Assembly: GCA_002269645.1 (NCBI GenBank)
Contig: NIVC01001173.1
Coordinates: 1-64,000 of the forward strand
Reading direction: 5' to 3'
From: Macrostomum lignano
Lineage: Eukaryota
Length of the DNA: 64,000 bases
Shown here: positions 1,297 through 4,200 of the stretch, in pieces
How the letters are laid out: each line of letters opens with the position of its first letter
Position numbering within the stretch: the stretch's first letter is position 1
Position numbers and translations under genes: made by a program
Notes under the pieces: model-generated
What the model was told of the DNA's origin: nothing
Database searches by the model: none
Seen by the model: the letters and a program-made list of their open reading frames with translations, nothing else

Positions 1297-4200
1297 CTAC
1301 TGAGAAGAGGTGGCAGGTTGGCCCTCCTCAGGCGGTTGCTCGGTCGCCGCCTCTGAATCCGGTTTGTAAAATTGGGCCAGCACAGACTCCGGCAGCTCGG
1401 TGAAGTGCACCAGCATCGAAGGCGACCGATAGAGAAACAGCAGCTTGGCGAACAGTTCCTCCTCCAGACGGAGTTCGCCGCTCTCCCGCACCAAATAGAT
1501 GTCGTTTAGCAGGGACAGGATTCTGTCCACGTGCGGCATGTCCACGTAGGGCACCAGATAGTGCACTGGCACAATGCCAGACCGCAGGATTCTGGCCACA
1601 GAGATCAGGAATACGGACAGGACGCCGTACATGCCGACCTTTTGAATGGCCTTTGAGCAGCGAGTAGTTATGGGGCGGTGGGATTCAGTTTGATGGCAAA
1701 TTTGTTTCGAGAATATTACAATTAACATACTATAGACAATGGGCTTTAAGAGGAAAGTTATGCGTGGAATGTCATCAGAATGTGTATGTCATGTCATCAG
1801 AATGTGTATAACATGTCATCAGAATGTGTATAGCATGTCATCAGAATGTATGTCATGTCATCAGAATGTGTATGTCATGTCATCAGAATGTGTAAAGCAT
1901 GTCATCAGAATGTGTAAAGCATGTTATCAGAATGTGTATAACATGTCATCAGAATGTGTATAGCATGTCATCAGAATGTGCATAGCATGTCATCAGAATG
2001 TGTATAGCATGTCATCAGAATGTGTATGTCATGTCATCAGAATGTGTATAGCATGTCATCAGAATGTGTATAGCATGTCATCAGAATTTGCATGGCATGT
2101 GAATGTCATCAGAATGTGTATAGCATGTCATCAGAATGTGTATAGCATGTCATCAGAATGTGTATAGCATGTCATCAGAATGTGTATAGCATGTCATCAG
2201 AATGTGTATAGCATGTCATCAGAATGTGTATAGCATGTCATCAGAATGTGTATAGCATGTCATCAGAATGTGCATGGCATGTGAATGTCATCAGAATGTG
2301 CATGGCATGTGAATGTCATCAGAATGTGTATATCATGTCATCAGAATTTGTATAGCATGTCATCAGAATGTGTATAGCATGTCAGAAGAATGTGTATGTC
2401 ATGTCATCAGAATGTGTATAGCATGGCATCAGAATGTGTATGTCATGTCATCAGAATGTGTATAGCATGTCAGAAGAATGTGTATGTCATGTCATCAGAA
2501 TGTGTATAGCATGGCATCAAAATGTGTATGTCATGTCATCAGAATGTGTATAGCATGGCATCAGAATGTGTAAAGCATGTCATCAGAATGTGTATAGCAT
2601 GTCATCAGAATGTGTATGTCATGTCATCAGAGTTTCACCTGAATAAGGCGGTTCTGGGACTTGGACCGCTCTGACAGCACCACAATACGGAGGCCGCCGT
2701 GGCGCCGTGGCGCGCAGCCGCTGTCAGACTGTGCCGGGCACAGCGGACTGCCGCAGTACAAATCGCTCAGCTGCCACCAGGCAATGCCGCCAATTGTGGA
2801 ATTCAAAGCCGCTTGAATGTCGATCCTGCTAGTGGACAGCGGGCCGGCAGGCAGGCTGCGGGCCAGCAGCTCGATGCTGTCGTCTGCCAGCGTGGGTCCG
2901 CCCGCTCCCCCGCCACCGCTGCCGCCTCCGCCGCCTACTCTGCCGCCGCCTCTGCCTCCGCCAGACGACCAGGTGGACTCGGAGGCTCGCATCAGCAGGA
3001 ACCGATGGCCAATCTGGCGGAATACAACGCTGGCATTGTCGGAGGCCGGGTGGAGTACGGAGAGCAGGTCGGAGCTCACGTCCGGCGGAAGCGGATTCTG
3101 GAACACGTACTTTCTGGCCACTCCGTTGTCTTTATCGCGCAGGCATTCCACCTGGATTGGAGAGTTGTGCACAAAATGAATTTATCTTCTCTGTTGAATC
3201 TCATTCCCGTGTCTGAGCTAAACAGCTTCTGGTTCTGCATCACTTATCACTCAGTTCCTCGTCTCCATCTCACAGTCCTCTTCTACATATCTTAACTTCT
3301 CTTCCCCATCTTTCAACTTCTCTTCCCCACCTCCCAGTTCCTCTTCCCTATCTTTTAACTTCTCTTCTACATCTCTCAATCCCTCTTCCACATACGAGTA
3401 TCTCAACTTCTCTTCCCCATCTTCCAGTTCCTCATCTCCATCTCCCAGTTCCTTTTCCACATATCCCAGTTTTTTTTCTACATCTCTCAACTTCTCTTCC
3501 CTATCTCCCAGTCCCTCTTCTACATCTCTCAACTTCTCTTCCCCATCTTCCAGTTCCTTCTTTCACTTAATGACAAATCAGATCTCTCTAATTTCTCACC
3601 TTAAAGTACAGATTCAAGGTGGCATTGTTCTGCAGTTCGGCGCGTAGGGCCTCACGCGAGGGCGGAGTTATAGTCCACAGAACGCTGGACATGCCGTCGA
3701 ATTCAACGCTATATGCGGTAGTAGAGCTCAGAAGGGCTTGGACACGTTTTCTAGTTTGCTGCAAGAACAACGAGTGAGCGAAAGTGTTCTAGCAGTGAGT
3801 GGTGAATAGGCAGCGGGTAGAGAGTAGATAGCGGATGGGGAGTAGGCAGCAGATGGGGAGTAGGCAGCGGGTGGGAAGTAGGTAGCGAGTGGAGAGTAGA
3901 TGGAGGATGAAGAGTAGATAGCAGATGCAGAGTAGATACCGGGTGGAGAGTAGATAGTGCATGGAGAGTAAATAGCGGATTGGGAGTAGGTAGTGGGAGT
4001 AGATAGCGGATTGGGAGTAGGTAGTGGGAGTAGATAGCGGATTGGGAGTAGGTAGTGGGAGTAGATAGTGGATTGGAAGCAGGTAGTGGAGGTAGATAGC
4101 GGATTGGGAGTAGATAGCGGATTGGGAGCAGGTAGTGGAGGTAGATAGCGGATTGGGAGTAGGAGAGCGGATGGAGAGTAGATAGCGGATCGGGAGCAGG

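Follow-up and report, generated by a model that had tools for sequence, protein, structure and literature searches.

In mouse Piezo1, the residues L2469, I2473, V2476 and F2480 all face the pore (Zheng, Gracheva and Bagriantsev, 2019; PMC6349400). V2476 forms the choke point of closed structures and of molecular dynamics simulations, and V2366 of C. elegans PEZO-1 is likewise a hydrophobic gate. Hydrophobicity at L2475 and V2476 correlates with the rate of inactivation: the time constant is 46.8 ms in V2476S, about fourfold slower than wild type, 62 ms in L2475S and 103 ms in the double mutant, L2475I cuts it to 2.8 ms, about fourfold faster, and mutants of the M2493-F2494 pair inactivate 1.6- to 2.7-fold more slowly whatever the hydrophobicity of the replacement (PMC6349400). 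Neutralization of E2487 or E2495/E2496 lowers cation selectivity. We describe here a Piezo gene, from the flatworm Macrostomum lignano, that is altered in this region. The window, i.e. the whole stretch of 64,000 nucleotides that was analysed (contig NIVC01001173.1, assembly GCA_002269645.1, positions 1–64,000 of the forward strand), carries this gene on its minus strand, and the segment under study comprises the inner helix, which lines the pore, and the proximal part of the C-terminal domain (CTD) of an intact, transcribed M. lignano Piezo gene, with Ser at the position of V2476.

A preliminary description of this DNA had placed a 34-residue peptide beginning GMYG and ending VDMP at window 1537–1638. 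The peptide is real and is carried by the minus strand, where 1537–1638 also translates to 34 residues, but the exact 34-mer occupies 1635–1534 (−), an offset of one codon; the plus-strand frame of the reported interval is meaningless. The coding stretch at 1635–1534 corresponds without a gap to mouse Piezo1 2465–2498, and a phmmer search of all PDB chains aligned the last exon as a whole, again ungapped, to mouse Piezo1 2465–2544 (5z10/6bpz numbering; E ~2e-14), with an equal match to Piezo2 and to the 2551-residue fly-type Piezo chain 9w7x; the whole pore module used as query gave the same alignment. The register is anchored by G2465, G2468, R2482 and the P2498-x-VDR motif. Judged by this alignment, the segment is homologous protein-coding sequence and not a chance match. 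It reproduced every substitution relative to mouse Piezo1 that had been listed by eye: Y2470L, I2473F, L2475I, V2476S and F2480I in the first half, and E2487P, M2493P, F2494Y, E2495V and E2496D in the second; K2479 is conservatively replaced by Arg. The gate pair is Ile-Ser (ATC TCT; I2498-S2499 of the gene model) at 1600–1605 (−), the codon of model L2493, opposite mouse Tyr2470, lies at 1617–1615 (−), and the P-Y-V-D sequence that aligns with mouse M2493-F2494-E2495-E2496 (model 2516–2519) is at 1540–1551 (−). Also as originally proposed, the anchor motif is conserved, PFLFELR at 5005–5025 (−) against mouse PFLVELR with model E2123 in the place of E2133, and so is the distal CTD (1420–1533, −). 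The Ser codon, TCT at 1602–1600, could not become a Val codon by fewer than two substitutions, and the same Ser is present in a second copy of the gene in the assembly (L001, contig NIVC01001172.1), so it is no sequencing slip. A shift of the helix register was considered as the source of the Ser, as most invertebrates have a Ser two positions later, and was rejected: G2465, G2468, F2473, R2479 and R2482 all fall in register without a gap.

How unusual these residues are was assessed by column counts over 106 Piezos from outside Macrostomum. At 2476, 98 of the 106 have a hydrophobic residue or Ala (Val in 59, Leu in 16, Ala in 12, Phe in 6, Met in 4, Ile in one); Ser and Thr occur in three each, and Gly and Tyr in one each. 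No other animal sequence in this sample has a polar residue at the position: the named Ser/Thr cases are all non-animal (Mesostigma, Anaeramoeba, Hildenbrandia, Diphylleia and Entamoeba), and one further Ser belongs to a JGI metagenome protein (P0157) without a taxon. Across these sequences, then, V2476S is unique among the sampled animals and not within the whole Piezo family. The adjacent site retains a bulky hydrophobic residue, the Ile being shared with seven of the 106. By conservation the most striking change is in fact Y2470L, which in these counts is a larger departure than the gate Ser, Tyr being present in 105 sequences and Phe in the remaining one; we found no literature on Piezo residue Y2470.

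The claim of lost acidic CTD residues fared less well, and is mostly an artefact of having made the comparison with mouse. Position 2487 (Pro in M. lignano) is Gly in 49 of the sampled Piezos, Asn in 16, Asp in 14 and Glu in only 13, Gly being the residue of most invertebrates, and at 2496 Asp (32 sequences) is common beside Glu (55). At 2495 an acidic residue is found in 67 of the 106 (Glu in 48, Asp in 19), the remainder, ~37%, being non-acidic, so that on these counts the claim shrinks to E2495V as its sole real departure. The M-F constriction is replaced by P-Y; 2493 is Met in 65 of the others, Ile in 20 and Pro in nine, and 2494 is Phe in 59 and Tyr in 27. Among the residues of the pore module, E2133, E2172 and S2150 are retained, and other residues of the lower fenestration differ (N2151H, C2154L, S2168W and S2491L; residue list from PMC7815867).

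The substitutions are not confined to one locus. When 1.84 billion representatives were searched exhaustively with HMMER, 1680 matched, and the two best are also from M. lignano, with pore modules 68% and 67% identical to that of the window. With the window gene they define three paralogue groups: A (window; gate region LISVAR), B (BOX15_Mlig022252g1, PAA84339.1, 2625 residues; LISIAR) and C (BOX15_Mlig015205g1, 019372g1 and 016368g1; VISIAR). All three have Leu at 2470, Pro at 2487, the Ile-Ser gate (Ser codons TCT, TCC and TCC respectively) and Tyr at 2494; 2493 is variable within the clade (Pro, Ala and Met in A, B and C), 2495 is Val, Ile and Val, and 2496 is Asp, Glu and Asp. The gate Ser is present in four independent loci. 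Overall the groups are 52–53% identical, and much closer in the transmembrane helices of the blade and in the pore. In the exon encoding the inner helix and CTD, Nei-Gojobori ratios of non-synonymous to synonymous substitution (dN/dS) between them are 0.11–0.21 at dS 0.97–1.44, from which we infer that the duplications are old and that the Ser was kept by selection in each lineage. Neighbour joining of 112 pore modules united A, B and C as one long-branch clade, sister to the neodermatans Paragonimus, Calicophoron and Cichlidogyrus, with the annelids next. The gene had been pictured as an odd paralogue beside a canonical one; that picture does not hold, as all three groups found carry Ile-Ser and no canonical Leu-Val M. 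lignano Piezo was seen among the 30 matches named from the best 150 of the 1680. By their place in the tree, the Macrostomum Piezos are a triplicated local version of the flatworm Piezo. That three old paralogue groups share a Ser gate maintained by purifying selection is, with the identity of the segment, very probably correct on the alignments and substitution rates.

The gene itself is intact, as had been supposed. A model built by hand from splice sites and phases runs from an ATG at 30396 to a stop at 1299–1297 (1297–30396, −), with 21 exons, a coding sequence of 7800 nucleotides and a product of 2599 residues in one reading frame; all 20 introns are GT-AG, the phases are consistent and the only stop is the terminal one. 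The protein is collinear end to end, N-terminus included, with the 2625-residue group B paralogue, and is long and polytopic as in the Piezo family (~2100–2800 residues). On consecutive exons, and with consecutive profile coordinates, it matches Piezo_TM1-24 (PF24871), Piezo_TM25-28 (PF15917), THU_Piezo1 (PF23188), Piezo_THU9_anchor (PF24874, E=6.9e-54) and Piezo_cap (PF12166). The last two exons are matched without a difference by GenBank model BOX15_Mlig015119g1 (partial, 185 residues), which also has the LIQ|AIQKVG junction across the final intron; since the GenBank models of this assembly derive from genome-guided assembly of RNA-seq transcripts (PMC5730564), the junction, which the preliminary description had wanted confirmed, has transcript support.

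The second copy, on NIVC01001172.1, is ~95% identical to window 1–4700. Over exons 19–21 the two differ by seven synonymous changes and one non-synonymous change (chance of at least seven of eight changes at third codon positions, 0.0026), the latter inside a Gly-rich insertion of the cap, and their introns differ by 3–7%. In exon 20 of the second copy the frame is broken twice by the loss of 1 bp within a short G/C run, at positions matching window 2911 and 2843; these deletions probably explain why BOX15_Mlig015119g1 is partial, and they look like errors of long-read assembly, although they could mark a decaying duplicate. Across the 106 other Piezos, 71 positions of the pore module reach a conservation of 80% or more, and groups A, B and C all retain 56 of these. 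Taken at the level of the gene sequence, this conservation, the substitution pattern between the two copies and the resemblance of the deletions to assembly errors are three lines by which the window gene is intact and functional.

An AlphaFold2 (AF2) monomer model of the pore module (mean predicted local distance difference test score 72) gave the helix and strand order expected of the Piezo pore-module fold, with a predicted outer helix, β-sandwich cap, inner helix and helical CTD. The modelled inner helix comprises pore-module residues 475–504 and the gate Ser is residue 495, so that both alignment and model put it in the middle of the predicted helix. The helix stops just before the Pro at 2487, the P-Y pair is in the loop that follows and the CTD helices begin at residue 520. 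The 19 best PDB matches of the model in Foldseek were all Piezo1, Piezo2 or PEZO-1 chains (E down to 6e-31), and isolated cap domains (4rax/4pkx) were also matched; TM-scores were low (0.34–0.52) as the orientation of the domains is off in a monomer model. Such a model yields secondary structure and confidence only, and not the placement of the Ser relative to the pore axis.

These observations can be put together as follows. In the ancestor of groups A, B and C the pore-facing Val was very probably replaced by Ser, the near-invariant Tyr2470 by Leu and the acidic residue at 2495 by Val or Ile, and purifying selection has since kept these states. If the channel is a trimer as in other Piezos, three Ser hydroxyls would stand where the hydrophobic pore is narrowest and other Piezos have a ring of Val, and this should reduce the dewetting barrier behind inactivation. 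Slower or less complete inactivation would be the likeliest outcome. One acid fewer at the intracellular lateral portals would mean a modest loss of negative charge, and possibly a modest change in conductance or divalent selectivity. We regard the whole of this explanation, from identity through fixation in the clade to the Ser-gate mechanism, as evenly poised between right and wrong, and a measurably slower inactivation, by analogy with the mouse mutants, as a close call at best.

Several points weigh against it. That the Ser faces the pore is read from helix register alone. The published mutants do bear out the earlier statement that polar residues at L2475 or V2476 slow mouse Piezo1, and V2476S does so; the kinetic inference drawn from this had overlooked L2475I, which speeds inactivation in mouse and could offset the Ser. 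Because of that neighbouring change the kinetic effect is unreadable from sequence, and its size and even its sign are context-dependent. Inactivation is moreover set at several sites (cap, blade, beam and lipids), and the Macrostomum cap is highly divergent and in part unalignable. In mouse, V2476S left selectivity, amplitude and threshold unchanged, as did L2475S and the double mutant (PMC6349400). Two of the three acidic residues described as lost are unconserved outside vertebrates and, since the channel retains E2133, E2172 and an acidic residue at 2496, no large change in permeation is implied. We found no electrophysiology of a flatworm Piezo in the literature, and no paper on a Macrostomum Piezo channel by title or abstract, the Piezo matches being likely mentions of instruments.

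The strongest competing explanation is that the Ser is near-neutral or kinetically compensated, the channel being an ordinary fast-inactivating, cation-selective Piezo in which drift on a long branch has been balanced by Ile2498 of the model and by other changes. The acceleration caused by L2475I in mouse is of the same magnitude as the slowing caused by V2476S, the M. lignano clade is a long branch with many changes, the position of M2493 has been free to vary within it, Ser, Thr or Ala stands at the gate of other eukaryotic Piezos, and several sites contribute to inactivation. Set against this is the retention of the Ser in three lineages over distances of dS>1 in the face of its absence from every other animal Piezo sampled; such retention argues that the residue matters, and not that the kinetics differ. 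We consider compensation a tentative but serious possibility. A bolder version of the Ser-gate explanation holds that all Macrostomum Piezos have dispensed with the hydrophobic transmembrane gate, giving sustained, weakly or non-inactivating currents with reduced divalent selectivity and closing by the cap gate and the cytosolic neck. This we think unlikely; if it were true, the clade would be a natural test of whether V2476 serves closing or only inactivation.

More improbable still is a departure from the fast-adapting role at the plasma membrane, the protein having become a tonic or intracellular Piezo of the kind reported from plants, or else a subunit that conducts poorly or serves in regulation, with the altered pore as a reflection of this change of role. 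A P-Y motif and a gate residue other than Val do recall plant, algal and protist Piezos, Hildenbrandia even sharing VPYVDMP, and the divergent cap carries a Gly-rich insert and lacks an alignable DEEED patch; but the clade groups with flatworm Piezos in the tree, so that the resemblance is convergent, and there has been no loss of the anchor, the outer helix, E2133, R2482 or the CTD. Finally, it is scarcely credible that the altered pore is no functional feature and that the locus is instead pseudogenic, misassembled or misaligned, an idea to which the deletions and partial GenBank model of the second copy lend some colour, as it is effectively refuted by the frame of the window copy, open throughout, the location of those deletions in G/C runs of a long-read assembly, the 7:1 excess of synonymous changes between the copies, the dN/dS among the paralogues, the ungapped alignment with conserved flanks, and a Ser codon two steps from Val at four loci. 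The reading we prefer accordingly remains that of an intact Piezo with a Ser gate fixed in its clade, with the kinetic reservations given above.

The remaining features of the gene are given here from the N-terminus (all coordinates are on the minus strand). Exon 1 (30333–30396) holds the start codon and the first 21 residues, which agree with the N-terminus of the group B protein. Exon 2 (30164–30247) encodes the first transmembrane helix and the start of the Piezo_TM1-24 profile, of which successive pieces (1–70, 72–258, 346–484, 484–593, 586–640 and 641–681) were matched. Exon 3 (29963–30082) is placed by Pfam and the gene model; exon 4 (28586–29114) covers profile 72–258; exon 5 (26970–27138), whose donor is ambiguous, fills 258–346; and exons 6 (24516–24938), 7 (23541–23918), 8 (19827–19975) and 9 (18977–19493) cover 346–484, 484–593, 586–640 and 641–681, exon 9 continuing into a disordered loop. 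Exon 4 also carries a run of 11 Gln (28921–28953) in the region of the first intracellular loop; the matching region of paralogue B is longer and different. Exons 10 (17606–17779), 11 (15641–16406) and 12 (14861–15035) follow from the gene model and the group B alignment. Exon 13 (13557–14214) encodes Piezo_TM25-28, exon 14 (11774–12621) an intracellular loop of the beam region, exon 15 (10301–10837) the THU_Piezo1 domain, exon 16 (9236–9656) a disordered loop and exon 17 (8530–8693) THU9. The acceptor of exon 16 was picked by phase and is the least certain junction; the exon 5/6 junction (two in-frame options) and the 15/16 junction have alternative in-frame solutions, and both lie in disordered loops, leaving the pore unaffected. 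Exon 18 (4606–5203) encodes the end of THU9, the anchor, the outer helix and the start of the cap, corresponding to mouse Piezo1 2017–2336. Exon 19 (3600–3758) is cap, exon 20 (2639–3151) runs from the cap to the start of the inner helix, its C-terminal part being the stretch identical to BOX15_Mlig015119g1, and exon 21 (1297–1650) encodes the inner helix, linker, CTD and stop. The Gly-rich cap insertion (2897–2962) is 22 residues long. The intron between exons 20 and 21 (1651–2638) is kept at the LIQ-AIQKVG position in group C as well, whereas paralogue B has no intron between its cap and inner-helix exons, the coding sequence running straight through (L004, ~25530–25562); an intron has thus been lost or gained among the paralogues.

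Nearly every intron of the gene holds its own long minisatellite array, each with a different unit (for example 22 bp × 38 copies, 31 bp × 100 and 25 bp × 139), and together the arrays account for most of the length of the introns; they lie at 1769–2631, 3822–4580, 5311–8455, 9842–10277, 10908–11683, 12704–13435, 17848–18886, 20060–23510, 26064–26679, 27202–28132 and 29130–29894. The M. lignano genome has been reported to consist of 15% tandem repeats and to contain 180 Mb of duplicated blocks at ≥95% identity (PMC5730564); the arrays fit the former figure, and the two together explain both the arrays and the second gene copy. Upstream, on the same strand as Piezo (−), is a TRAPPC11-like gene (~43400–53950), whose exons match Pfam Foie-gras_1 and Gryzun and whose introns are also full of tandem repeats. 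Inspection of the open reading frames, made without a database search, revealed no convincing coding frames in 30500–43400 or 54000–64000, only repeat-derived ones and low-complexity arrays.

Family, fold and site function are all known, and the gene is already in GenBank/UniProt as a hypothetical or Piezo-type protein. What appears to be undescribed is a polar gate residue, together with Y2470L, fixed in all the Piezo paralogues found in one animal lineage. V2476 is the best-validated gating residue of the family, as it forms the choke point of closed structures and mutagenesis shows it to be the chief determinant of inactivation, and the clade is a natural experiment on how far the hydrophobic-gate model carries beyond mammals and on whether animals tune mechanosensory adaptation at this site. 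Should the kinetics prove ordinary, the gate residue would be shown to be context-dependent; either outcome would be an increment within a well-known family and not a new system. M. lignano is tractable to transgenesis, and tests in vivo are feasible.

By comparison with mouse and human Piezo1 and Piezo2 (PDB 5Z10, 6BPZ, 6B3R, 7WLT, 6KG7 and 8YEZ), the window protein has the same order of THU9, anchor, outer helix, cap, inner helix and CTD, and its pore module matches mouse Piezo1 with E ~3e-85 (HMMER) at ~30–40% identity. E2133, E2172, R2482 and the CTD sequence LVRE...EEELxAKLxFLYRSP are shared; it differs in having Ile-Ser in place of Leu-Val, in Y2470L, M2493P/F2494Y, E2495V and E2487P, and in a C-terminal half of the cap that is unalignable and lacks a recognizable DEEED patch. 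Relative to the engineered mouse Piezo1 mutants (PMC6349400), it has naturally V2476S, L2475I and a pair other than M-F at 2493/2494; in the mutants the changes were introduced singly into mouse Piezo1, and in the flatworm protein they occur in combination.

Its closest relatives are paralogues B and C, of the same clade, with the same Ile-Ser gate, L2470, P2487, Y2494 and Val or Ile at 2495; they differ from A in overall sequence (~53% identity), in having Ala or Met at 2493 and in the absence of the Gly-rich cap insert. The neodermatan Piezos of Paragonimus westermani (KAA3682259.1), Calicophoron daubneyi and Cichlidogyrus casuarinus, the nearest outgroup, also have a constriction other than M-F (C-L or C-K), but differ from those of Macrostomum in a hydrophobic gate (F-L or L-F), in Tyr2470 and in E-E at 2495/2496. 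Drosophila Piezo (PDB 9w7x) has an L-L gate and M-F-E-D, V2366 is the conserved hydrophobic gate of C. elegans PEZO-1 (PDB 9uoy/9zis), and Gly or a non-acidic residue is normal at 2487 in invertebrate Piezos. Outside the animals, Piezos (Mesostigma viride, Anaeramoeba, Hildenbrandia rubra, Diphylleia, Entamoeba and plants such as Macadamia) have Ser, Thr or Ala at 2476 and P-Y at 2493/2494; plants have Ala at the gate and RIPYENLP, and the nematode Rhabditophanes has RIPFNELP. The non-animal proteins are 26–33% identical to that of the window and occupy a distant, separate part of the tree; since the tree places the Macrostomum clade with flatworm Piezos, the likeness is convergent. The Piezo homologue of the red alga H. 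rubra has exactly the heptapeptide VPYVDMP encoded by window 1554–1534, with Thr at the gate and an overall identity of 28%, and on sequence comparison this match too looks convergent.

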